Of a stretch of DNA of 64,000 bases, positions 9,965-23,172 are shown piece by piece. The stretch lies in the sequence record AP017925.1, one strand, 5' to 3'. Made by a program: the position numbers and the translations under genes. Position 1 is the stretch's first letter. Each line of letters opens with the position of its first letter. The notes under the pieces were generated by a model. That model saw only the letters and a list, made by a program, of their open reading frames with translations. It was not told the DNA's origin and did not search any database.

Positions 9965-10035
9965 ATCTTTTTTCTTCCAACAAGAGGGAACAACAGCCTG
10001 CTTTATTGCAGGCTATACTCATAGTAATCGAGGCA

Positions 10036-10070
10036 GCATAAAGCCCGGGTTTCCCCGGGCCCATATGCCG
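10036..10070. terminator. symmetric terminator closing the U32/permease operon
   Basis: GCATAAA-GCCCGGG-tttc-CCCGGGC-CCATATGCC. Confidence 0.8.
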
Positions 10071-10082
10071 TTGAAGTTAGGA

Positions 10083-11123
10083 TTACATGGCTTGGAAGAG
10101 GCCCACGAACACCATCAGTCCTGCGAGCCCGCCAACGTAACGATAGAAGTCAGCGGGACGGGTCTTGAAGTAACTGGCCGAGATAGCACCGCACTTGTGA
10201 ACCGGGGACAACAGATAACCGGCGTATTCTGCCATCAGGATGATCGGGAAATACTGGATACCGAATAGCAACGTCATTGCCACACAGATACCAGCGTACT
10301 TACCGCTCGAACCCAGCGCAAACGATGCTGCGAAGCCGCCAGCAACAGCCACACCGATCAGGCCAGGAGTCAGTGTGCCCATGTGTGCGATTTTGAAGAA
10401 GTTCTGGATGGCATCCGAGTTCATCTTCAGGTAGTTCGACAACACGATCACCCCAGCAACCAACAGCAAGGTATCCCACTTGATGAAGGAGAGCAGTTCT
10501 TCAGCTCGCACTCGGTTAGTGATAACGTAGAACAATGCCACCACTGGGAAGATGAAATACGGTTCGCAGAAGATGCTTGCCGCCAGACCAGCCAAGAATG
10601 GCACGATTTGCAGCACTTCCAAAGCCGAATACGACTTGCGCACCGTTGACAGCTCGATGTCATCTTCCTGCACGTAGTTGAACACCACGAACACGAGGTA
10701 AGCCACGTAGGCGAGCAGCGGCCAAACGGTGTAGGCCAACAGTTGCGAGTACGTAAGGCTCAAACCAGCCATCATGATCAGCACGGACTTCTCCAGCGGC
10801 GACCACAAGTAGTAGTGATGTGTTGCCACGAAATCGAGCACACCCATCTTGCCACGCGAAGCATGCGCCGAGCAACAACTGTCACGCGGTGTCTTGACGA
10901 GCGAGTCGAGGATCGGCGCTGAGACACTGACACGCCCTTCCACCGGCAGCACACCGGAGATCAGGGAGATGCCGAGCAGTGCGAGTCGTTTCGACCGCAC
11001 TTTGTCAACAAACGCGACAAAGGCCGGGATGAACAACCCTCGCGTCTTGAAGATGCCTCCGATGATAAAGGCGCTCAGCAGCACGAGCAGGGCCTCCTGG
11101 CCCGAGAAGAGAAGTTTAAGCAT
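10083..11123 (-). CDS. multi-pass membrane permease, ion-transporter (IT) superfamily / DUF401-like
   Basis: About 9-10 hydrophobic segments. GVLPVEGRVSVSAPIL and HHYYLWSPLEK motifs. Start moved to MLKLLF (8-nt overlap with the upstream stop). Confidence 0.7.
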   Translation of the reverse strand: MLKLLFSGQEALLVLLSAFIIGGIFKTRGLFIPAFVAFVDKVRSKRLALLGISLISGVLPVEGRVSVSAPILDSLVKTPRDSCCSAHASRGKMGVLDFVATHHYYLWSPLEKSVLIMMAGLSLTYSQLLAYTVWPLLAYVAYLVFVVFNYVQEDDIELSTVRKSYSALEVLQIVPFLAGLAASIFCEPYFIFPVVALFYVITNRVRAEELLSFIKWDTLLLVAGVIVLSNYLKMNSDAIQNFFKIAHMGTLTPGLIGVAVAGGFAASFALGSSGKYAGICVAMTLLFGIQYFPIILMAEYAGYLLSPVHKCGAISASYFKTRPADFYRYVGGLAGLMVFVGLFQAM

Positions 11124-12156
11124 GTTGTTGATTTTCCTTGATTTTAGCGACCGTGTCTTCACACACAGTGCACTTCCAGCAATTGAACCGACAGGTTCGG
11201 ATGGTTTTCAACCAGATCTTGCGATCCAGCTCCGGCAGCACTGACAAGGCTTGACGGTAAGGATCATCGATCATTTCCCGTCGCACGAACTGCCGAACGA
11301 TTTTCAGCGTCTGGTAGAACGTGTGCTTACTCTCTCGCCCATGCATCTTGAAGACATCGACGTAGTTCGAGAGATTATCGAGCGTGCTATAGAAAGAGGG
11401 GATACTGGCAGCTTTCAGCGCCCAGAGAATGGAGTTCTCGTCCTTGATCTTGCAGGGCGAGATATCAAACATCTCCGAAGCGAAATAGGCCTTGTCTTTC
11501 TCAGCACGACGAAGGTTGTAAGTGTAATGGTCCTGATGTACCGGACAGTTCCCTTCACACATTTCGTTATACAGCAACGAGATGTAGAGCTTTCTTCCCA
11601 GCTTCCTTTCCATCGCTAATTTAGCAGCGTGGACTTCTTTCAGCGTGCGCTCGTCACGCATCAGAGTCCGGTCGAGGTTGATATAATCGAACCCATCTTG
11701 GAAAAGCACTGCAACTTCCGAAGCTGTCTGTACACGGTTGAGAATCGTGTTCTTGACAAACAGTTCCGGAAACTCCTGCTTCAGTCCAAACCGCAACCAT
11801 GCCGTATTCGGAATGGTGACGATTCGGATACCTTCGTCATAAAGCGGACGAAAGTGCTTCACGAACGTTTGATAGTTCGCAAAGCTGGGTGAAACGGTGA
11901 TGTTGTTGAAAGTAGGAGAGGCATGCAGTCCAAAGCGGTCAGCAACGATCATCGCATTACGCGTAACTGTTGCGACTTCTTCAGGGACAATCACACCGCC
12001 CATGGCATCGTTTTGGAACGGGGGTAGCCGGCAGGTGAAGTACAAGTCCGAGATAACGTCCTTGCACTCCTCCAGAAACGGATACACATCCCGCTCGATC
12101 TCCTCTGGACTCAAACCGGGCCACAGAGGGATCGAGAACTGGATGTCTTTCAGCAT
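11116..12156 (-). CDS. U32-family-like Cys-rich TIM-barrel protein (putative Fe-S enzyme)
   Basis: DYINLDRTLMRD, LLYNEMCEGNCPVHQDHY, SPC, FKMHGRE (cf. U32 KIEGR) and a C-terminal CRFNCWKCTVC. Confidence 0.65.
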   Translation of the reverse strand: MLKDIQFSIPLWPGLSPEEIERDVYPFLEECKDVISDLYFTCRLPPFQNDAMGGVIVPEEVATVTRNAMIVADRFGLHASPTFNNITVSPSFANYQTFVKHFRPLYDEGIRIVTIPNTAWLRFGLKQEFPELFVKNTILNRVQTASEVAVLFQDGFDYINLDRTLMRDERTLKEVHAAKLAMERKLGRKLYISLLYNEMCEGNCPVHQDHYTYNLRRAEKDKAYFASEMFDISPCKIKDENSILWALKAASIPSFYSTLDNLSNYVDVFKMHGRESKHTFYQTLKIVRQFVRREMIDDPYRQALSVLPELDRKIWLKTIRTCRFNCWKCTVCEDTVAKIKENQQHA

Positions 12157-12804
12157 TTAGCGATCCTGTAAGGCCAGTTGCTGATCGCGAACATCGCGCA
12201 GAGCATTCTGCGTGACGATAGCTTGACCTTGCGCCAGCGACAGAATGCTCTGCTGCTGTTCCAGCGGCAGGTTCAGGATAGCTTCCAGAGTGCCTTTGTT
12301 GATGGTGCCGAAGTTGATCAGGTCAGAATGCACGCCACGCGCCAACTTGTGCGTCCAGAAGTGCGCTTCGTTGACTGCGTGGAAGTTCGGATCTTGCAGC
12401 TCCTTGAGCAGCTTTTCTTTGCCGCCGAAATGCTCATCGGCAAGCTTGATCAACTGATCATTGAAGAACTGGACTTCAGCGTTCTGCTGACTCAAGATGG
12501 ACTGCTTGCGATTCAGCTCGAACTCGTACCGGCGGATCTGTACATCTTGCAGCTGGCTTTCGAGTTTGTTGAACGAGCCTACTTTTTCTTTCGCTTGCTC
12601 GGCCTGCTGTTTCTTGATCTGCAACTCCTCGATATCGAAACCGATCGAGGTGATGTTTTCAAGACGTGCGCGCGTCTCGACGATAATCTGCCGCAGCTTG
12701 CGATACGGCGTGATCTGATCCTTGATCACGAAATTATCCATCTGGAATACCGACATGCCATTCGACATATGCGGTTCGAGACTGAGGTAAAGGCTGATGT
12801 CCAT
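12157..12804 (-). CDS. coiled-coil protein (215 aa)
   Basis: Heptad-rich Q/E/K/L core between FVIKDQITPYRKLRQ and FWTHKLAR. Abuts the U32 gene with zero gap. Confidence 0.75.
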   Translation of the reverse strand: MDISLYLSLEPHMSNGMSVFQMDNFVIKDQITPYRKLRQIIVETRARLENITSIGFDIEELQIKKQQAEQAKEKVGSFNKLESQLQDVQIRRYEFELNRKQSILSQQNAEVQFFNDQLIKLADEHFGGKEKLLKELQDPNFHAVNEAHFWTHKLARGVHSDLINFGTINKGTLEAILNLPLEQQQSILSLAQGQAIVTQNALRDVRDQQLALQDR

Positions 12805-12818
12805 CTTGGTTACCAGGG

Positions 12819-13295
12819 TTAGAGGTTATAGTGGAGATTCTTGCGGATGTAGGTACGTGCGTCCTCGGCAGTCGTCAGTGCATTCACGGCATCGACGTAC
12901 GTTTGCACGATGTCGTCAGCAATGTCATACATCCGTTTCTTGTCAGGAATCCAGACGTTGAGCATCAGCCATTTCATGTAATCGAGCTGGATGGTCAACT
13001 GGTCTTCGCTATAAATAATAGCCCGCCTGTTTTTATTATCCACCTCAGTGCCAAACGCTACTTCCCCGTTGAAAGGGTCATACCAAAGCTTACGCCCTTG
13101 CGGGTGCTGGTAGAAGATGTGTTTGGCGTACTGCTCGTCCGGATAGTCGACAACGAACTCCGCATTCGGGGTAGTCGGACACACGACGATGAACAGGCGG
13201 TTTTCCAGTGCGCCGCCGCCTACGATTTCAAAACCATCCGGTTGCTGACTGTGATCAAACGTACCGGACTGATTCTTAACAATGAAGAATGCCAT
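12819..13295 (-). CDS. hypothetical protein (158 aa)
   Basis: Abuts the Kelch-like gene with zero gap. Confidence 0.75.
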   Translation of the reverse strand: MAFFIVKNQSGTFDHSQQPDGFEIVGGGALENRLFIVVCPTTPNAEFVVDYPDEQYAKHIFYQHPQGRKLWYDPFNGEVAFGTEVDNKNRRAIIYSEDQLTIQLDYMKWLMLNVWIPDKKRMYDIADDIVQTYVDAVNALTTAEDARTYIRKNLHYNL

Positions 13296-14222
13296 TTAGA
13301 ACCCCTGCATCATCTGGCCAGATGACTGGGCAAGCACCAGATCCGGCAAAGTGGCGATAGCTTCGGTGGCAAGCGAGATGCGCTGGCACAGACCGTGCTG
13401 CGTATTGCCGTAACGACCCGTGGTGTCGGAGTAACCAGCCATCATAAAGCCATAACTGCTGTTCGCCAGAGCATGACTCTCACCGAAGTTGTACGAGTAG
13501 GATGAAGCTACTGTGAAGGCTTGAATCGTTGAACCGCTGACATCAAGACGGACGTTGCGACCAAGCATACCAACGAAGTAGCCGCGAGTGTTATTCACGC
13601 TCATGCCGCACGGAATCTGGATATTGCTGTCCAATGCTGATGGGCCACCAATGCCGGACGCTACCGCCTTCGTCGTGAAGTTGAGCGTAGTAACGGATTG
13701 GTTAGCCGGCGTCAGGAAGAAACCAGCCGAGCCCGTACCGATAGCTTGTCGAGTGCTACCGTAAGGTGCACTGGAAAGCAAACCTTGGCTTGTCGGCGTA
13801 TCGGTCGTCAAATCAACCTTATACCAGTCACCATCGATACTAGCTTGGATCGACGGATTGACTGTAGCCAAAATCCAAGCCTGCGAATAGACGTTCAAGT
13901 CGGACACTGACACACTCGGATCGCGCGCAGTAGTGAACGATGCAGATGCGCTGGCGGTGATGTAGTTGAACTTGTTGTATGCTGTCGTATCACTGATCGA
14001 GAAGTAACCATTGTACGCCCCAGAAATACCAGGGCGGTAATTACGCTGGTAACCAGTGTCATACACGAGCTGCCCTACTTGCGTAGTCGTGTTGAACAGC
14101 TGCACTTTGGAGTGCACAGTAGAGTCTTTGTAGCCACCTTGCAGGTAGCCAATCGAGCGTTGTACCGGTCCCAAGTTCCCCGGGACCGTACGATTTCTCG
14201 TGAGTGCTTTTAAGAGACCCAT
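13296..14222 (-). CDS. Kelch-like beta-propeller protein (~308 aa)
   Basis: Repeats of the type GYLQGGY...VQLFN, GYFVG and GFMMAGY...QRIS. Start moved to MGLLKAL (RBS GAGGG). Confidence 0.6.
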   Translation of the reverse strand: MGLLKALTRNRTVPGNLGPVQRSIGYLQGGYKDSTVHSKVQLFNTTTQVGQLVYDTGYQRNYRPGISGAYNGYFSISDTTAYNKFNYITASASASFTTARDPSVSVSDLNVYSQAWILATVNPSIQASIDGDWYKVDLTTDTPTSQGLLSSAPYGSTRQAIGTGSAGFFLTPANQSVTTLNFTTKAVASGIGGPSALDSNIQIPCGMSVNNTRGYFVGMLGRNVRLDVSGSTIQAFTVASSYSYNFGESHALANSSYGFMMAGYSDTTGRYGNTQHGLCQRISLATEAIATLPDLVLAQSSGQMMQGF

Positions 14223-14233
14223 GTTTCCCTCAA

Positions 14234-14746
14234 TTAGGCAGTATTGGCCAGGATAGCGATCGTCAGATCGGTAAGCGTGGCATCTTGCGTAGATGGCAGG
14301 CACTTCATGGCAAATTGGTCGCCCGGGTTGAGTAACAGGTCAGTTGCCAGAGTAAACGTGCCGTTGGTCGCATTCGCAGCAAAGTTCAGCGTACCAACCT
14401 GTACACCGTTCTTCATAATCGCAATGTCGAACGAAGCAGAGGCTGCAATACTACAGAAAGCAAAGCTACCCGGACAGCCAGCCAGAATCTTGACTGTGCG
14501 AACAGAAATCGCACGCATCAAGATTTCCTGTACGAGCGGCTTGCCGTTGATGAAGTTGTGAAAGTCATAGGTAGACGGACCAGCAGGTCCTTGAATACCC
14601 TGGGAGCCCGTCGCTCCGGTAGCACCCTGCACACCTTGCGGGCCCGCAGGCCCGGCAGGCCCTTGGGGTCCCGCAGGAATAGCGGCTACCTTGCCATCGA
14701 CATAGCCTTGCGATGCGAGCGCTTTGCCATTAACAGGAAAAGTCAT
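14234..14746 (-). CDS. short collagen-repeat structural protein (170 aa)
   Basis: About 11 GXY triplets (GPQGPAGPAGPQGVQGATGATGSQGIQGPAGP) followed by a beta-rich C-terminal domain. Confidence 0.75.
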   Translation of the reverse strand: MTFPVNGKALASQGYVDGKVAAIPAGPQGPAGPAGPQGVQGATGATGSQGIQGPAGPSTYDFHNFINGKPLVQEILMRAISVRTVKILAGCPGSFAFCSIAASASFDIAIMKNGVQVGTLNFAANATNGTFTLATDLLLNPGDQFAMKCLPSTQDATLTDLTIAILANTA

Positions 14747-14827
14747 TTTTATTCCGCCACGAATATGAGTTAAAAGATACTCGACCCCTTATAAGGGTCG
14801 TAAGCTCATAGTAATCTCAGTCGCAAC

Positions 14828-14860
14828 GGCATAAACGGCGGTGGGGGAAACCCACCGCCT
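14828..14860 (-). terminator. intrinsic terminator with TTTATGCC tail
   Basis: GGCATAAA-C-GGCGGTGGG-ggaaa-CCCACCGCC. Confidence 0.8.
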
Positions 14861-14894
14861 TGGGTGCTCCTTAGCCCCTAAGTGCAGCCAGTGT

Positions 14895-15512
14895 TTAAGC
14901 CAGCCACGGTAAAGCAGCAGTGTCTAGGAAATTCATGCTCTTGGCGAAGAAACTAGCGCTGACGAACATGAGAAATCCGTGATACTGTTGAACGAACTTC
15001 GAACTACTTTGTACTAACCCCCTGAAGCCATCACGAACGATGGCCATGCTGCCAAAATTGCTGTCACTGCCACCAGTTAACACATTCTCACTCTCGTGGA
15101 ACACCGGCTCAATGTACGTCTGCCAATAATCCACCGCATTGCCTTCATGCGGCTTGAAAGTGCTTCCATCCCATACAAGCAAGAACGCTTGCCCGCGAAC
15201 CAGAGCTTGATCCGGATCACGCAACAATACTACACGCTCTTTACCTGCAGCGACCAAATAGCGGCTTTCCAGGATACTGTTGCCATCCAATCCGATGCGT
15301 TCACGACAGATATACTGCATCGGTTGACGGCGGTATCGCTGAGGATAGTGCGCACTATCCTCATGTTGACTTGTTAGAAAGTCAAATGGAAGTACCTCAG
15401 TTTGTCGACATAAACGATTGCGCACATTCCGATACAGCATTTGATACGACTGGAACTTCAAACGTTCCTGCATCGGAATTTCACTGCACGCGTCTTCGCA
15501 CATATCTAGCAC
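14895..15512 (-). CDS. hypothetical protein, start uncertain (may begin at 15320)
   Basis: The C-terminal 140 aa look protein-like. The N-terminal part crosses a perfect 24-bp palindrome. Confidence 0.45.
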   Translation of the reverse strand: MLDMCEDACSEIPMQERLKFQSYQMLYRNVRNRLCRQTEVLPFDFLTSQHEDSAHYPQRYRRQPMQYICRERIGLDGNSILESRYLVAAGKERVVLLRDPDQALVRGQAFLLVWDGSTFKPHEGNAVDYWQTYIEPVFHESENVLTGGSDSNFGSMAIVRDGFRGLVQSSSKFVQQYHGFLMFVSASFFAKSMNFLDTAALPWLA

Positions 15513-16997: not shown

Positions 16998-18683
16998 TTA
17001 GGTCGATGCCTCCACAACAACGTCGCCGATGCCATTGATACTGATCGGAACGAGCGTATCGCCAGTCGTGCTGGTCGTTACCGAAGTGGTCGTTGCGCCA
17101 CCCGCGAAGGTAGCGTTACCACTGGTGATGGCCAGATTCAGGTTCTGAGCGATGCGCACGCCGGACGAGTTCCAGATGTTCACGTGAGCGTTCGTATTGA
17201 TCGCAGCACCACTAAAGGTGTAGATCGAATTGTCGAACGTCACAGATACACTGTTCGGCAGGTTTTCCGGGTTGATGTAATACAGCACTGCACCATTACC
17301 AGACTGGTTACCGCTACTGCCTTCGATCATCCAGATCCGTTCTTGCGAGTCAACGCCAATCGCAATGAACTGACCAGCATACTCGCTCACCTTTTGGAAG
17401 AGCGTGGCATCATTGAACTTGTAGATCGCGATACGGTCAGCCTGACGCACCACCAGACGATCGTGCGCGTCAGACGTGAACATGGTGTGGTAAGCACGAG
17501 CATTATCAGCAATGCTGAATTTCTGAACGAATTTCAGCGTGCTCTTGCTGGTGATTTCGAACAGAACGCCGACGTGGGAAGCCTGGGCTTCCAGGGTACT
17601 GGCTGGCGCTTCCGTGATCGTCACAAGCAGATAAACCTTGCCTGTAGTCGAAGTACGATCGATGATGGATGCGCGGATCTTGCGTGCGCTCGGCTGAGCG
17701 CGACTCAGTGCTGGGAATGCGGACACGCCACCATTGCCAGTCCAGTCGTAAGTGCAGGCCGCCAGCGTAGCGGTCGGCGTGGTCGGTATGGTATCGACAG
17801 TAATGGTCGACACCGAAATATTGTCAGAACCAGCAGTCGACTCAGCTACGAAGAAATAACCGCGCGCCGAAGTCTCGTTGATGATGTGCGACGGAACCGC
17901 ACCGCAGTGGTCAACGCTCGCAGCGCCGGTGATAGCAGCACTCAGAGTCGTCAGCGTTTTTGCTTGACGGTTAATCACGGCAACAGTAGCGGCGTCAGTA
18001 GCTGTTTGCCACTGTTTGTTACTGTAAAGAACAGCGAAGCTGCCCAGAATACCAGTGATTGTCCGACCGTGGGACTGCCCGGAGAACGAACCCATCAGTG
18101 GAGAGTTTGCTGTATTGAAGTCAGCAGCTGCATTCGTAACTTGGCTCGAACCAAAACCCATCGCTTGCAGGATGTTGATGTAAGAGCCGGAGACTGCTGG
18201 CAGCCAAGATGAGATCGCGTTGTACTGATCCAGGGAGCCAGTCCAGCTAGCATAAGAAGCCAGCGCATCCATGGTAGCGCGATCGCGCTTGAACATGCCG
18301 TTACGCGCACCCAACCCGCCACCACCAGCCACCACAACGAAATTCTCGCCGGGTTGCGGCGGGACGTAATTGGGAGTGCCGTTGGCCAGCAGGCCAGCAT
18401 TCATGTAATCGGAGCAACCGCCGCCAGCATCGCTAGCCGCAGCTATAAACATGGCGTTCGGTGTAGCCGAATAGATGACGCGAGGAAGCGCCATGTACCA
18501 GCCTGGACCACCGTCAGGAGTAGTGCCAGAATAAGGTAATGGCGCGCTCGGACCTTGGCGATAGTTGTCGCCAAGCGGAGCCAGCGTGGTGGGGTTATAC
18601 GGGGAACCGTCGATATAGAGAGTGCCGTCAATGTCGACGACGTTCATCCCCAAACCACGACGCAGGGTTTTGAACTTAATCAT
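16998..18683 (-). CDS. putative tail fibre / receptor-binding protein, paralogue C (561 aa)
   Basis: N-terminus MIKFKTLRRGLGMNVVDIDGTLYIDGSPY and an Ig-like C-terminus shared with 19005..20702. S/T/A/G-rich. Confidence 0.65.
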   Translation of the reverse strand: MIKFKTLRRGLGMNVVDIDGTLYIDGSPYNPTTLAPLGDNYRQGPSAPLPYSGTTPDGGPGWYMALPRVIYSATPNAMFIAAASDAGGGCSDYMNAGLLANGTPNYVPPQPGENFVVVAGGGGLGARNGMFKRDRATMDALASYASWTGSLDQYNAISSWLPAVSGSYINILQAMGFGSSQVTNAAADFNTANSPLMGSFSGQSHGRTITGILGSFAVLYSNKQWQTATDAATVAVINRQAKTLTTLSAAITGAASVDHCGAVPSHIINETSARGYFFVAESTAGSDNISVSTITVDTIPTTPTATLAACTYDWTGNGGVSAFPALSRAQPSARKIRASIIDRTSTTGKVYLLVTITEAPASTLEAQASHVGVLFEITSKSTLKFVQKFSIADNARAYHTMFTSDAHDRLVVRQADRIAIYKFNDATLFQKVSEYAGQFIAIGVDSQERIWMIEGSSGNQSGNGAVLYYINPENLPNSVSVTFDNSIYTFSGAAINTNAHVNIWNSSGVRIAQNLNLAITSGNATFAGGATTTSVTTSTTGDTLVPISINGIGDVVVEAST

Positions 18684-19004: not shown

Positions 19005-20702
19005 TTAAGTCGTAGCCTCGATAACCACGTCACCAATGCCGATGATGTTCACCGGAACTTGCAGCGTAGCTGTAGTCAATGTGGTTACGGTCGTTTGCGT
19101 CGTACCATCTTGGAACTTCGCATTGCCACTCGTGATCGTGATCGTCACGTTGCCGGCTTTGCGTACACCAGCGGCCGTGCGGAGATCCACGTTCAGGTTC
19201 GCAGCTACCGGAGTGCCTGCGAATTGATACGTACCGCTATCGAATGAAACCGACAGGCTATTTGGAATACTTTCCGGATTCACGTAGTAGAGCGACGGAC
19301 CTTGTGCAGACAGGTTACCGGCCGTTACATCAATCATCCAGATGCGTTCGGTGCTATCCACACCCACGCCGCCCCAAACACCGCTGTACTCAGCCAATTT
19401 GGCGAAGTAAGTACCGTCGGTAAACTTATAGACAGCGATACGGTCAACTTGCTTCACGATCAGACGATCGTGGGTATCGCTGGTCCACAACGTACCGTTA
19501 GCGCGCGCGTTGTCAGCCAAACTGATTGACTGTACGAACTTCAGACTGGTGGGTGTGGTGATCTCGAACAGCAGACCCTTCATAGCTGCTTGAGCTTCGA
19601 AGGATGACGAAGTCGGTTCAGTCACCATTACGAAGAGATAGCGTTTACCTGCTGTAGCTGTGCGGTCAATGATGGATGCGCGGATCTTGCGCGCGCTGGA
19701 CGTGTTGCGACTCAGCGCGGTAAAGGCAGTCACACCGCCATTGTTGGTCCAATCAATGGTTGCCACTTGATTGGAGGCAGTCGGAGTACCAGTACAATCC
19801 ACCGACACTACGTTAATAGCGACGTTATCGCCACCGGCAATCGACTCCGGCGCGTAGAAATAACCCGTGCTGGCGCCAGTATAGGTCATTTCCGAAGCAA
19901 CGCTGCCGGCGCGATCCTGCGACGCCGCGCCAGTAACTGCTGTGCTTACCGCAGTAGCTACTCTGGTTTGGCGATTTACTACGTGCAAAGTATTCGCGGC
20001 AGTGGCCGGAGAAGCATTGGCTAGCGAACTGAAGAATACTGCGTAACTACCAAGAATACCTACACACTGACGGATCTTGAAGTCATTACCGATGGAAGTA
20101 CCGAAATACACTGATGGGGCGGTTGTGAAGTCAGCCGGTATGTTTTCGACGATATTCGAATAAGCATCTGCGCGTTGCGCCCACATCAGGTAGCTACCGC
20201 TGACGTTGGGTAGCCACATGGACATATGCATGTACCAGCCCGATTGGTTGGCGTAAGAACCACTACCTACACCAGGCATGGCAGCGAGCGCATCCATCGT
20301 AGCGCGATCGCGCTTGAACATGCCGCCGGTATAGCCCAAGCCAGCACCGCCCGCCACGACGAGGAAGTTTTCACCGGACTGCAGCGGCACATATCCAGCA
20401 GTACCATTAGCAGTCAAACCAGCGTTCATGTAGTCGCTGTTATTAGCGCCACAATCAGAAGTCATATTGGCGACTACACCGTTAGCAGGACACCAGATGG
20501 TGGCGCGCTGTAGTGCCATGAACGGTGGGAATGCCCAATCCGTACCAAGAGCGTCGAGCTGTCTGGCCGGGCCTTGTTTGTAGTTGTCGCCAAGCGGAGC
20601 GAGTGTTTGAAGGTTGTAAGGAGAGCCATCGATGTACAGAATGCCATCGATTTCTACAACGTTCATGCCGAGCCCTCGGCGGCAATTCTTGAACTTGATC
20701 AT
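19005..20702 (-). CDS. putative tail fibre / receptor-binding protein, paralogue B (565 aa)
   Basis: Long identical blocks shared with paralogue C (GMFKRDRATMDALA, SARKIRASIIDRT, QERIWMI/TERIWMI). Confidence 0.65.
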   Translation of the reverse strand: MIKFKNCRRGLGMNVVEIDGILYIDGSPYNLQTLAPLGDNYKQGPARQLDALGTDWAFPPFMALQRATIWCPANGVVANMTSDCGANNSDYMNAGLTANGTAGYVPLQSGENFLVVAGGAGLGYTGGMFKRDRATMDALAAMPGVGSGSYANQSGWYMHMSMWLPNVSGSYLMWAQRADAYSNIVENIPADFTTAPSVYFGTSIGNDFKIRQCVGILGSYAVFFSSLANASPATAANTLHVVNRQTRVATAVSTAVTGAASQDRAGSVASEMTYTGASTGYFYAPESIAGGDNVAINVVSVDCTGTPTASNQVATIDWTNNGGVTAFTALSRNTSSARKIRASIIDRTATAGKRYLFVMVTEPTSSSFEAQAAMKGLLFEITTPTSLKFVQSISLADNARANGTLWTSDTHDRLIVKQVDRIAVYKFTDGTYFAKLAEYSGVWGGVGVDSTERIWMIDVTAGNLSAQGPSLYYVNPESIPNSLSVSFDSGTYQFAGTPVAANLNVDLRTAAGVRKAGNVTITITSGNAKFQDGTTQTTVTTLTTATLQVPVNIIGIGDVVIEATT

Positions 20703-21235: not shown

Positions 21236-21517
21236 TTACCGCCAGTGGAACCCACCGCCTTTGCCGCCGCCATTCGACATTTTGACAAAATTGCAGCGAG
21301 AAGCAATCGTTGCAGCCACAGGCACAATCCCAGGCGCAACCAGTTTAACACTGGCCTTGACGCGTTGAGTCAAGAGCGGTTTCCCGCTCACGACTTTTGC
21401 TTTCACGCGCTTAAATGCCAGTTGGTTGACGGTGGCCTGGCCATGCACGCTAACCACTTGGTTCTTTACAGTCCCAGGGTCAAACGTGACGCGAGACGTT
21501 ACCGTTGCTCTGGTCAT
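21236..21517 (-). CDS. small fibre-associated protein with C-terminal GGFHWR (copy 1)
   Basis: ATGA overlap with the 552-aa gene. Ends ...GGGKGGGFHWR*. Confidence 0.7.
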   Translation of the reverse strand: MTRATVTSRVTFDPGTVKNQVVSVHGQATVNQLAFKRVKAKVVSGKPLLTQRVKASVKLVAPGIVPVAATIASRCNFVKMSNGGGKGGGFHWR

Positions 21518-23172
21518 GATGTAGCCGCATCGATCGAAATATCACCAGGAGCGGTGATAGTGAATGGAACCAGCGTCGGGCCAGTAGCAGACGTGGTGAA
21601 CGTCGTCTGAGACAGCGTCACGTTCGTCGACGGCGTCAGCGTCACGTTTGCAGCAACATAGTTACCATTCGCATCCGTTACGGAGACCGTCAGTGTACCG
21701 CTAGCCGGCGCGCCGCTGTACGAGTAGCTGCCGCTATCAAACGACAGGTTGATCGTGTTAGCGGTGCCAGTCGGGTTGATGTACCACAGCTCCCATTCAC
21801 ACATCGTTGCGGGCGTAGCCGAAATCGGGTTGATGTACCAGAAGCGACCAGCGGAGTCAAAGCCATGCGACCAAGCACCGTAATACTGAGTAGCGCTGAC
21901 ACGACCCAGTGTAACAGTGTTGGTCTTATTCAGGACACCACCAGTACCGACCGACCAGAACTCGTAGCGGTCATCGTAGGCAACCACAAAGTTCATGCCA
22001 TTGTCGTCTGCCGTGGTCATCGAGCGCGGGCTCGGTGCCAAGTTATACGTGCCCACGTAAGTGGCTGTATTTTTGTCGGTCAGCTTGTACACGTACATTT
22101 TCTGCAATGCCGTCGTCGGAGTGGCAGCACTGTTTTCGAAGCCGATCACCAGTAGATATTTGTTACCATCCGTGTGGTTGATCAGTTGTACACGCATCAC
22201 ACCGACTTGCGTCAGTGTCATTGGGTTTTGATCCAAGGTCACCAAGTTATTGGTGATCGCTGGTGTTGCGTCCAGGCTACTCATAGCTACGCGATGGATT
22301 TCCATCGCAGTAGCGGAGCGCCAGATCACGTAGGAACTTTTCTCGTTAGAGAGAGTATCCCAAGCAAAGGACGGAGCAGATTGCGCATAACCCATGCCGG
22401 TGCTAATGGTAGAGGCTCCCGCCGGTGCACCCAGCGAGGTCGAGTAGGCAATTGCTGCCAGCGTTGCTTTAGCAACGGCTCGAACCTCCATTGTAGCCTG
22501 AATCGCGCTGGCGCCAACATACGTGTCGACAAAATACCAACGATTGGTGTCTTCGCCGACACGATGCGCGGCGAACATGGGTCCCAGAGCCCTAGAGCCA
22601 AACAAAAGCGTTGTTTGGCCAGCAGTGGTAGTGCCAACAGGAAAGCTTTCAACGCTCGCAGACAGATACGAGTTGCTGTAGTGCCGAGTCATAGCAAGCC
22701 GGCCAGCATTCACCGATGGTAACCAAACAGCTTCATGGTTCCACAGAGAAGTCGTATAGGTACTCGCACTAGCCGGATTACTGACGTTGCCGGTATTCGG
22801 GTCCCAGTCGTAAACCATAGCCAAACCAGCGTCGGAGAAGTTCCGGATATTGCCATTCGGCAACGTCTGATGGCAAATCTCCACGCCGTTCCAGCGACCG
22901 CAAAGCACCATATCGAAATCGCTTGCGATCTGGCCCGGCGAACCTCCAGCAACGTTTGGTGTCATTGGCTGATAACCGCGCATCATTCGAATAGTCCATG
23001 CGTTGTTATACGCCACCGGTGACATGCTCGATGTCATCGGAGCCGCAGGAGCGCCGATGACTTCACTCAGGTCACTTACCCGGTACACTTTGTTATCGAT
23101 GTGCAGGTTATTACCCAACTGAACAGCGAGGCGGTTGGGGAACATGCCCCGATAAGTCTTAAGTTTAGGCAT
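21514..23172 (-). CDS. putative tail fibre / receptor-binding protein, paralogue A (552 aa, divergent)
   Basis: Similar N-terminus (LHIDNKVY vs LYIDGSPY) and C-terminus (WYINP...INLSFDSGSYSYSGAP...GDISIDAA). TAATG-coupled to the collagen fibre gene. Confidence 0.65.
   Translation of the reverse strand: MPKLKTYRGMFPNRLAVQLGNNLHIDNKVYRVSDLSEVIGAPAAPMTSSMSPVAYNNAWTIRMMRGYQPMTPNVAGGSPGQIASDFDMVLCGRWNGVEICHQTLPNGNIRNFSDAGLAMVYDWDPNTGNVSNPASASTYTTSLWNHEAVWLPSVNAGRLAMTRHYSNSYLSASVESFPVGTTTAGQTTLLFGSRALGPMFAAHRVGEDTNRWYFVDTYVGASAIQATMEVRAVAKATLAAIAYSTSLGAPAGASTISTGMGYAQSAPSFAWDTLSNEKSSYVIWRSATAMEIHRVAMSSLDATPAITNNLVTLDQNPMTLTQVGVMRVQLINHTDGNKYLLVIGFENSAATPTTALQKMYVYKLTDKNTATYVGTYNLAPSPRSMTTADDNGMNFVVAYDDRYEFWSVGTGGVLNKTNTVTLGRVSATQYYGAWSHGFDSAGRFWYINPISATPATMCEWELWYINPTGTANTINLSFDSGSYSYSGAPASGTLTVSVTDANGNYVAANVTLTPSTNVTLSQTTFTTSATGPTLVPFTITAPGDISIDAATS

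Follow-up and report, generated by a model that had tools for sequence, protein, structure and literature searches.

A conserved gene pair encoding a helical-looking protein and a predicted divergent U32-like enzyme in the tail-fibre locus of Ralstonia jumbo phage RP31

The U32 family (Pfam: PF01136) includes TrhP, RlhA, and UbiU/UbiV, Fe-S proteins needed for O2-independent, prephenate-dependent hydroxylation of ring carbons. TrhP acts on U34 of tRNA and RlhA on C2501 of rRNA, whereas UbiU/UbiV act on a quinone precursor; thus, two of the three characterized subfamilies act on RNA (PMC6599085; PMC10990095). Direct hydroxylase activity has not yet been shown in vitro even for the characterized U32 proteins (PMC10990095). 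In Bacillus subtilis, the trmR-trhP1-trhP2 operon for mo5U34 synthesis joins U32 enzymes to a class I methyltransferase. In cyanomyoviruses, two gene clusters of hypothetical proteins, T4-GC_353 and T4-GC_354, lie at the end of the tail-fibre cluster. Other described proteins relevant here are collagen-like phage fibre proteins and BclA-type proteins with a collagen part and a globular head, the Kelch β-propellers of Keap1, KLHL12, and KLHL17, and the DUF401/TIGR00529 (AF0261) and CitMHS carriers.

The analyzed window is a stretch of 64,000 nucleotides from the genome of RP31 (AP017925.1). The original prediction described a coupled six-gene module in a fibre locus, flanked by terminators and encoding a collagen-domain protein, a Kelch-like protein, an unknown protein, a coiled-coil protein, a U32-like Fe-S enzyme, and a permease. 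This observation was confirmed. The genes are herein referred to as g1-g6, and the following features were found:
14828..14867, minus strand: stable hairpin upstream of the unit, terminator-like for the preceding gene ORF141
14805..14816, minus strand: exact 12-nt motif GATTACTATGAG between the two upstream hairpins, a candidate phage promoter or processing signal
14782..14800, minus strand: second, smaller hairpin in the leader of g1
14234..14746, minus strand: g1 (ORF140, 170 aa), short collagen-like fibre protein
13296..14222, minus strand: g2 (ORF139, 308 aa), predicted six-bladed Kelch-type β-propeller
12819..13295, minus strand: g3 (ORF138, 158 aa), acidic protein without a recognized family
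12157..12804, minus strand: g4 (ORF137, 215 aa), soluble, helical-looking partner protein (phrog_1409; T4-GC_353)
11116..12156, minus strand: g5 (ORF136, 346 aa), predicted divergent U32-superfamily TIM-barrel enzyme (phrog_1458; T4-GC_354)
10083..11123, minus strand: g6 (ORF135, 346 aa), polytopic membrane permease of the DUF401/TIGR00529 type
10034..10070, minus strand: stable hairpin directly after the g6 stop, terminator-like end of the unit
9993..10029, minus strand: second copy of GATTACTATGAG (10018-10029) and a following hairpin (9993-10016), ahead of the next gene ORF134

All six genes have ATG starts and TAA stops and are separated by gaps of 11, 0, 14, 0, and -8 nt. The stop codon of g4 abuts the start of g5, and the start of g6 overlaps the end of g5 by 8 nt. 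The 308-aa start of g2 (14222) is supported by homologs covering 100% of it, although GenBank gives 292 aa, and the 215-aa start of g4 is supported by conserved N-termini in homologs. Both flanking hairpins are stable, with free energies of -22.9 kcal/mol (z -3.1) at about 14829-14867 and -27.8 kcal/mol (z -5.1) at 10034-10070. However, their U-tracts are weak and the terminator scan called neither of them; therefore, their designation as terminators is an inference. The same scan found the smaller hairpin in the g1 leader (-12.2 kcal/mol, z -3.7). Only two copies of GATTACTATGAG occur in the window, one at each border of the unit, and the architecture ahead of ORF134 (hairpin of -14.5 kcal/mol, z -4.7) is the same as that upstream of g1. 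Placement in a fibre locus is reasonable, as a 1090-aa tail-fibre gene lies upstream and a virion structural gene downstream. ORF140 (g1), ORF133, and ORF150 were detected in RP31 virions, g1 by LC-MS/MS with 2 peptides (PMC5468394, Table S3), whereas g2 to g6 were not detected in virions.

The g1 protein contains 11 G-X-Y triplets at residues 26-58 and a C-terminal globular domain shared with phage tail-fibre families. The Pfam Collagen match (E 4.8e-6) scores 26.7 bits against a cutoff of 27.2, and PHROG tail-fibre families match both halves of the protein. Like the collagen-like fibre and BclA-type proteins, g1 has a G-X-Y run followed by a globular domain, but it is very short; in the relative L027, the same C-terminal domain ends a 588-aa fibre. 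For g2, the Kelch-like assignment was confirmed at the fold level. The AF2 model is all-beta (pLDDT 82.6), and the top Foldseek hits in the PDB are the Kelch domains of KLHL17, KLHL12, and Keap1 (E 2e-11, TM 0.70-0.77). In contrast to these proteins, g2 has no Pfam hit, including Kelch repeats, shares only 10-14% identity with them, has no BTB/BACK region, and is encoded in a phage fibre context. Its 95 homologs are all environmental. The g3 protein forms a singleton PHROG, and no match was found in Pfam, NCBIfam, or the PDB. It was found only in the RP31-like lineage, always directly after g2, with homologs in the same position in the loci L002/3, L025, and L027.

The g4 protein belongs to phrog_1409 (E 9e-69). 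It has no hydrophobic segment and a low-complexity, helical-looking sequence, on which alone the coiled-coil assignment rests. Residues V26, T32, P33, Q39, E43, E110, E146, W150, D161, and G171 are invariant. The g6 permease matches Pfam DUF401 (E 3.2e-10; 40.4 bits against a cutoff of 24), CitMHS below its cutoff (27 bits), and TIGR00529 (E 1.6e-11). The match is full-length, but the TIGR00529 score is far below the equivalog cutoff. About 8-10 hydrophobic segments were found in g6. Thus, the predicted assignment to the ion-transporter superfamily was supported, but nothing indicates that the permease imports a metal, as had been proposed.

No direct hit to U32 was found for g5 in Pfam, NCBIfam, or PDB sequences, and its membership in this family is remote. 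Nevertheless, several lines of evidence tie g5 to U32. The AF2 model is a confident (β/α)8 barrel (pLDDT 92.9). In Foldseek, the U32 protein Mk0906 (5d88) has the best TM score (E 7e-6), although this E-value is no better than for other TIM barrels such as MTHFR. In BFVD, the first hit outside the family is a phage "Peptidase". The g5 profile reaches a relative, P0372, that passes the Pfam Peptidase_U32 cutoff. hhalign to E. coli TrhP gives 90% probability (E 1.5e-6), and a tblastn search with TrhP hit the g5 homolog in the locus L026. Confident homology covers only about 90 residues, over strands 4-6, and identity is about 15-18%.

The K-M-H-G-R-E, C-x3-C, and terminal C-x3-C-x2-C-x2-C motifs noted in the original prediction are all present in g5 and conserved far beyond chance. 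In 80 sequences of 20-45% identity, C322, C326, C329, and C332 are invariant, while C200, C204, C235, K270, G273, and R274 are at least 90% conserved. Relaxed alignments, which are of low confidence, place C200, C204, and C235 on C170, C177, and C193 of TrhP and K-M-H-G-R on K-I-E-G-R; C170 and C177 are essential in TrhP (PMC6599085). Thus, g5 would keep a Cys pair after strand 7, a third Cys further on, and the Lys-x-x-Gly-Arg motif after strand 8. The canonical C-x6-C-x15-C-x3-C spacing is not kept: the first pair is C-x3-C, the fourth Cys is absent, and the Glu eight residues before the first Cys is missing. On the other hand, the four invariant C-terminal cysteines are not found in E. coli TrhP. 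The g5 protein also differs from TrhP, RlhA, and UbiU/UbiV in being phage-encoded and in being accompanied by a non-U32 helical-looking partner rather than by a U32 paralogue.

The recurrence of the block in other genomes, named beforehand as a test, was also analyzed. The block recurs as a unit in other phages, and its tight packing is conserved in relatives. In total, ten genomic contexts of g5 were examined. In all of them g4 and g5 lie in the same locus, adjacent in most, and g6 lies within two genes of g5 in seven. The g4-g5 pair was found in RP31-like phages, 118-123 marine cyanophage records, other phage contigs, and two bacterial MAGs. Homologs of g4 were found in 118 cyanophage records, directly upstream of the g5 homolog in most of those shown. 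The cyanophage proteins, encoded in the same order as in RP31, have 22-25% identity to g4 in the records shown and about 37-41% to g5. In all 123 cyanophage records, the g5 domain is followed by a C-terminal methyltransferase domain, which is a separate adjacent gene in L026 and is absent from RP31. The permease gene is missing in the close relative L025 and in most cyanophages, and the cyanophage loci examined (L004-6, L008, and L009) contain no homologs of g1-g3. A propeller, fibre, or lectin-type protein usually lies upstream of the pair. These proteins are non-homologous in different lineages, being Kelch propellers, LVIVD propellers, LamG proteins, S74 or collar fibres, or collagen fibres. 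Additionally, relatives and the permease are found next to genes for radical-SAM/SPASM proteins, HxsD, 2OG-oxygenases, a flavin halogenase, and S8-peptidases.

The original interpretation, a virion-protein or RNA modification system with its own importer or a host-envelope-remodelling complex, is thus only partly supported. Tight coupling of the genes, the U32-type barrel with conserved cysteine motifs, the permease group, and recurrence of the block hold. However, this is not one indivisible six-gene module: the conserved core is g4 and g5, g6 is frequent but dispensable, and g1-g3 are fibre-type neighbours varying by lineage. Hydroxylation of the collagen prolines of g1 is unlikely, as U32 enzymes, so far as characterized, act on sp2 ring carbons (PMC6599085; PMC10990095).

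We consider the unit most likely to be a late, co-transcribed operon of two sub-modules: fibre or receptor-binding type proteins (g1-g3) and a mobile enzyme cassette (g4-g6). The analysis itself establishes the gene packing between two stable hairpins, the kinship of g5 to U32, the conservation of its seven cysteines, the g4-g5 pairing, and the methyltransferase link in cyanophages, whereas Fe-S binding, catalysis, transport, and the target are inferred. In this tentative view, g4 and g5 together would carry out an O2-independent hydroxylation of an aromatic or heteroaromatic carbon, and the C-terminal cysteines could supply the missing fourth ligand, a second cluster, or both. In cyanophages, the new hydroxyl would then be methylated by the following domain. 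The g6 protein, taken as a translationally coupled anion-type permease, would move a carboxylate co-substrate or product. The target, the weakest step of this model, would be the co-encoded binding or fibre protein, or a peptide, rather than RNA. The recurrent upstream binding proteins and the neighbouring genes listed above support a protein or peptide target. On the other hand, no modified virion protein is known, tail-fibre regions are also hot spots for unrelated cargo genes, so that position alone is weak evidence, and a coupled permease fits a small-molecule substrate better than a protein one.

An unlikely alternative is an RNA-modifying enzyme. In this case, g5 would hydroxylate C5 of a pyrimidine in tRNA or rRNA, and the cyanophage protein with the methyltransferase domain would make a 5-methoxy base, copying the B. 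subtilis pathway and retuning decoding late in infection. The precedents of TrhP and RlhA and the hhalign link to TrhP agree with this reading, although TrhP was the only subfamily compared, so nothing shows that g5 is closer to the RNA-acting subfamilies than to the others. The best solved-structure match of the cyanophage methyltransferase domain is B. subtilis YrrM/TrmR, but this match is weak and not significant (E 0.025). Several of these proteins are named "O-methyltransferase YrrM" by JGI, whereas NCBIfam does not name the protein. Both RP31 and cyanophages carry tRNA genes. However, an RNA enzyme explains neither the coupled permease, nor the helical-looking partner, nor the constant placement among fibre and propeller genes, RP31 lacks the methyltransferase, and no RNA link has been shown.

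Equally doubtful is a small-molecule tailoring cassette, in which g5 with g4 would hydroxylate a quinone precursor, as UbiU/UbiV do, or another aromatic acid, g6 would import the substrate or export the product, and the cassette would be cargo merely located in the fibre region. This is supported by the g5-g6 overlap and by the recurrence of g6 near g5, including in a bacterial chromosome with no phage genes nearby. CitMHS-type carriers, and possibly DUF401 proteins, whose substrate is not known, move organic anions. The neighbouring halogenase, 2OG oxygenases, and methyltransferase are typical tailoring enzymes. However, g6 is not always present, no core biosynthetic genes accompany the cassette, a lytic phage would have no obvious benefit from such a product late in infection, and the upstream binding proteins are left unexplained.

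A non-catalytic role, with g4 and g5 as a chaperone or scaffold for the neighbouring fibre or propeller proteins, the cysteines binding structural zinc, and the U32 likeness as an evolutionary relic, could account for the constant placement among fibre genes and the absence of a direct family hit, and the C-terminal four-Cys motif could equally be a zinc knuckle, but this role is very unlikely, because the methyltransferase domain argues for chemistry, the cassette also occurs in a bacterial chromosome without fibres, and polar residues at the C-terminal face of the barrel (D37, N84, K135, T137, R167, E198, H210, D267, K270, and R274) are conserved at 90% or more over 20% sequence identity, as is typical of an active site.

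Six minus-strand ORFs, herein referred to as g1 to g6 (ORF140 to ORF135, in order of transcription), were analyzed in the genome of Ralstonia phage RP31 (AP017925.1). Bases 10000-14900 are 100% identical to RP31 and about 100% identical to RP12; both are phiKZ-related jumbo phages with genomes of about 277-280 kb. All six genes are annotated there as hypothetical proteins. The observation made in the original prediction, a tightly packed six-gene unit flanked by hairpins, was confirmed. All six ORFs have ATG starts and TAA stops at the predicted bounds, and the gaps between them are 11, 0, 14, 0, and -8 nt. No intergenic space inside the unit could hold a signal. The following features were found in or around this unit:

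14805-14816, minus strand: first copy of the 12-mer GATTACTATGAG, upstream of g1
10018-10029, minus strand: second copy of this 12-mer, upstream of ORF134
13296-14222, minus strand: g2 (ORF139)
12157-12804, minus strand: g4 (ORF137)
12178-12822 and 12831-13325, plus strand: long ORFs of 214 and 164 aa opposite g4 and g3
16998-18683, 19005-20702, and 21514-23172: three paralogous genes of about 555 aa
23172-26444: a tail fibre of 1090 aa with collagen repeats

Two of the GenBank start codons look too far downstream. RP31 ORF139 is annotated as 292 aa, but homologs cover the full 308 aa of g2. RP31 ORF137 is annotated as 203 aa, whereas RP12 and the homologs support 215 aa for g4. The long plus-strand ORFs opposite g4 and g3 are most likely antisense artefacts, because the family matches lie on the minus-strand genes.

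The hairpins flanking the unit fold at -22.9 kcal/mol (z -3.1) and -27.8 kcal/mol (z -5.1). Their U-tracts are weak, and both were missed by a generic terminator scan. Each hairpin is followed by the exact 12-mer GATTACTATGAG and then by a second, smaller hairpin, which points to a putative terminator-plus-start architecture at both borders. This 12-mer may be a phage promoter or an RNA-processing signal. However, it is not supported as a general promoter, since only two copies occur in the 64 kb, no more than expected by chance for the count alone. Scans for sigma-70 promoters and intrinsic terminators also gave counts no higher than in shuffled sequence.

The g1 protein is collagen-like, having 11 uninterrupted G-X-Y triplets at residues 26-58 and a C-terminal domain shared with tail-fibre PHROGs. 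Its Pfam Collagen score is 26.7 bits, just under the cutoff of 27.2, and collagen and BclA structures were found among its PDB hits. This protein is one of 32 proteins found by mass spectrometry in RP31 virions, whereas g2 to g6 were not found there. In the related metagenomic phage contig L027, the same C-terminal domain ends a collagen fibre of 588 aa. The g2 protein was modelled from 47 sequences with pLDDT 82.6, and the predicted structure, a six-bladed propeller, matches Kelch domains with TM 0.70-0.77 and E about 2e-11. No Kelch repeats were detected by Pfam, so that the Kelch-like call of the original prediction is correct at the fold level only. The g3 protein is confined to the RP31-like lineage, with no relatives outside it and no structural match.

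The g4 protein belongs to phrog_1409 and has ten invariant residues. A weak NCBIfam hit to hemerythrin (E 0.007) was rejected, because none of the histidines is conserved in the g4 alignment. A search of PDB sequences with the g4 profile returned only noise. Fusions of g4 and g5 were sought by comparing the N-terminal extensions of two longer g5 relatives, P0250 and P0318, with the g4 profile, and no similarity was found. The g6 protein has the hydrophobic stretches of a polytopic membrane permease of the DUF401/ion-transporter superfamily type and matches Pfam DUF401 at 40.4 bits (cutoff 24) over residues 18-339. It also touches TIGR00529 and CitMHS, the latter with 27.2 bits, below the cutoff of 31.9.

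Direct searches with g5, a protein of 346 aa, against Pfam, NCBIfam, and PDB (with phmmer and with a profile) returned nothing relevant. Ten g5 relatives of 400-580 aa also had no Pfam hit. The AF2 model, built with 43 homologs, is a (beta/alpha)8 barrel with pLDDT 92.9. Among PDB fold hits, the solved U32 protein Mk0906 (5d88) has the best TM score (TMq 0.48, TMt 0.64, E 7e-6), although other TIM barrels, such as MTHFR and aldolases, reach similar E-values. Among viral models in BFVD, the first hit outside the family is a phage protein named 'Peptidase' (TMt 0.71, E 6e-9).

A profile search of 1.84 billion representatives found 578 relatives of g5. One of them, P0372 (E 1.6e-19 to the g5 profile), scores 35.5 bits against Pfam Peptidase_U32 (PF01136), above the gathering score of 22.4. 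A profile of 80 sequences was aligned by hhalign to Escherichia coli TrhP, the only U32 protein used as a comparator, with 90% probability and E 1.5e-6, over 89 columns (g5 residues 88-179). TrhP also hits by tblastn the g5 homolog of contig L026. Hence, g5 is considered a divergent branch of the U32 superfamily, but not a member of the Pfam family as defined.

In TrhP, the motif binding the 4Fe-4S cluster is C-x6-C-x15-C-x3-C (C170, C177, C193, and C197, positions read from locus L015), and C170 and C177 are essential. In g5, C200, C204, and C235 align to the first three of these cysteines, but only in relaxed or global alignments; the spacing differs and the fourth cysteine is absent. Instead, four additional C-terminal cysteines, C322, C326, C329, and C332, are invariant in all 80 sequences and might compensate for this absence. 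A Lys-Ile-Glu-Gly-Arg-type motif after the last barrel strand is characteristic of U32. In the relaxed and global alignments, K270-M-H-G-R274 of g5 falls on K-I-E-G-R of TrhP, with the Glu replaced by His, and K270, G273, and R274 are at least 90% conserved.

The C-terminal C-x3-C-x2-C motif also suggested a radical SAM enzyme. This reading was rejected, since no Radical_SAM hit was found in g5 or in the Pfam families most often matched among 80 relatives, and no radical-SAM structure appears among the top 50 PDB fold hits. Additionally, the motif lies at the extreme C-terminus of g5 and not after strand 1 of a partial barrel.

Gene neighborhoods were analyzed in ten contexts, a sample rather than a statistical survey. 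The same six genes, in the same order and with equally tight spacing, occur in the related metagenomic phage contigs L002/L003 and L027, while five of the six occur in L025. In all ten contexts g4 and g5 are found together in the same locus, and in seven of them g6 lies within two genes of g5.

Table. Genes of the unit in the ten contexts examined (L numbers designate the loci and contigs compared).
RP31/RP12: g1-g6
L002/3: g1-g6
L027: g1-g6, with g1 as a long fibre after a tail-collar fibre
L025: g1-g5, no g6
L024: g2, g4, g5, a 75-aa gene, g6
L007: two g2 copies, g4, g5, and a g1-type protein beside an S74 fibre
L026: g4, then 2OG oxygenase, radical SAM, g5, a separate methyltransferase, one gene, g6
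Cyanophages S-H25 and metaG-MbCM1: g4, g5 with methyltransferase domain, one gene, g6, tail-fibre assembly gene
Most other cyanomyoviruses: g4 and g5 with methyltransferase domain; in the contigs examined (L004-6) followed by a flavin halogenase and 2OG oxygenases
Two bacterial MAGs, L018 and L019: g4, a 209-229-aa gene, g5, g6

Different, non-homologous binding proteins precede the cassette in different lineages. L019 is a chromosome contig of 6.4 Mb with ordinary cellular neighbors and a LamG-domain protein upstream. The Pseudomonadales MAG contig L018 (10-10357) carries, in order, an LVIVD beta-propeller protein, a g4-like gene, a gene of 209 aa, a g5-like gene, a g6-like gene, DUF6519, and a tail-sheath-like gene. 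The cassette therefore also occurs beside a contractile tail-like element. In two further bacterial MAG contigs (L017, 2309-6041; L020, 4962-6877), a DUF401 permease homolog without any g5 lies next to a radical-SAM/SPASM gene, which hints at a wider link between DUF401 carriers and Fe-S enzymes. The U32-positive relative P0372 lies in an HxsD/radical-SAM cluster with small ORFs.

The methyltransferase domain was found in exactly the 123 cyanophage records that carry g5 and is absent from the Ralstonia phages. NCBIfam and single-sequence PDB searches with this domain found nothing, and only a weak profile hit to YrrM was obtained. In L026 (5356-10635), g5 is preceded by 2OG-oxygenase and radical-SAM genes and followed by a separate Methyltransf_24 gene and, one gene later, by DUF401, which represents a split version of the cyanophage two-domain protein. 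A gene of the flavin-dependent Trp_halogenase family sits directly beside g5 relatives in marine cyanophage contigs (L004-L006, 9671-11194) and in two short metagenome contigs (L010/L011). This gene appears to resemble the published cyanophage halogenase VirX1, whose natural substrate is not known.

The interpretation given in the original prediction was supported only in part. The analysis itself demonstrates one tightly coupled late unit with two sub-modules, the kinship of g5 with U32, a g4 partner in every context examined, and a frequent, translationally coupled permease. Binding of an Fe-S cluster and a prephenate-dependent, O2-independent hydroxylation of a ring carbon, which in cyanophages would be followed by O-methylation, are only inferred from the family (PMC6599085, PMC10990095). 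The hydroxylation of prolines in the collagen repeats that was originally suggested does not fit known U32 chemistry, and nothing supports the suggestion that the permease imports a metal.

The target is the weak point of this interpretation. The recurring binding or fibre proteins, as well as the peptide-modifying neighbors, make a protein or peptide our tentative first choice. The TrhP and TrmR parallels keep RNA as a possible target, while the permease and the tailoring neighbors are compatible with a small molecule. In a more far-reaching reading, which is not excluded but is considered unlikely, g4-g5 could be the first U32-type Fe-S system that acts on a protein. In this view, aromatic side chains of the phage's own receptor-binding proteins would be hydroxylated without oxygen and, in cyanophages, then O-methylated, and the system would be spread between phages, tail-like particles, and bacteria, sometimes together with a dedicated carboxylate permease. 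C5-hydroxylation of pyrimidines in phage DNA is likewise not excluded, but it is not supported by the evidence.

U32 proteins are an emerging class of oxygen-independent hydroxylases, for which only three substrates are known (two RNA bases and ubiquinone precursors), and most subfamilies are uncharacterized. The branch described here is phage-borne and highly divergent, and has its own partner protein, an additional cysteine cluster motif, and often a permease. It is connected to an abundant pair of 'hypothetical' genes in marine cyanomyoviruses (T4-GC_353/354), where it is followed by the methyltransferase domain. Both core families are listed in PHROGs as having unknown function and in the RP12/RP31 paper as hypothetical, and full-text searches found no earlier report of a phage or cyanophage U32 protein. 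Although no product is known yet, the finding gives a concrete chemical hypothesis (hydroxylation followed by methylation) for genes present in over a hundred sequenced cyanophage genome records, and offers a tractable Ralstonia phage system in which to look for the product. It is of interest for studies of both U32 hydroxylases and cyanophage accessory genes.

The three paralogous genes of about 555 aa (phrog_20698 and phrog_38139, unknown function) are located between the analyzed unit and the collagen-repeat tail fibre of 1090 aa, and may encode alternative fibre or receptor-binding proteins.
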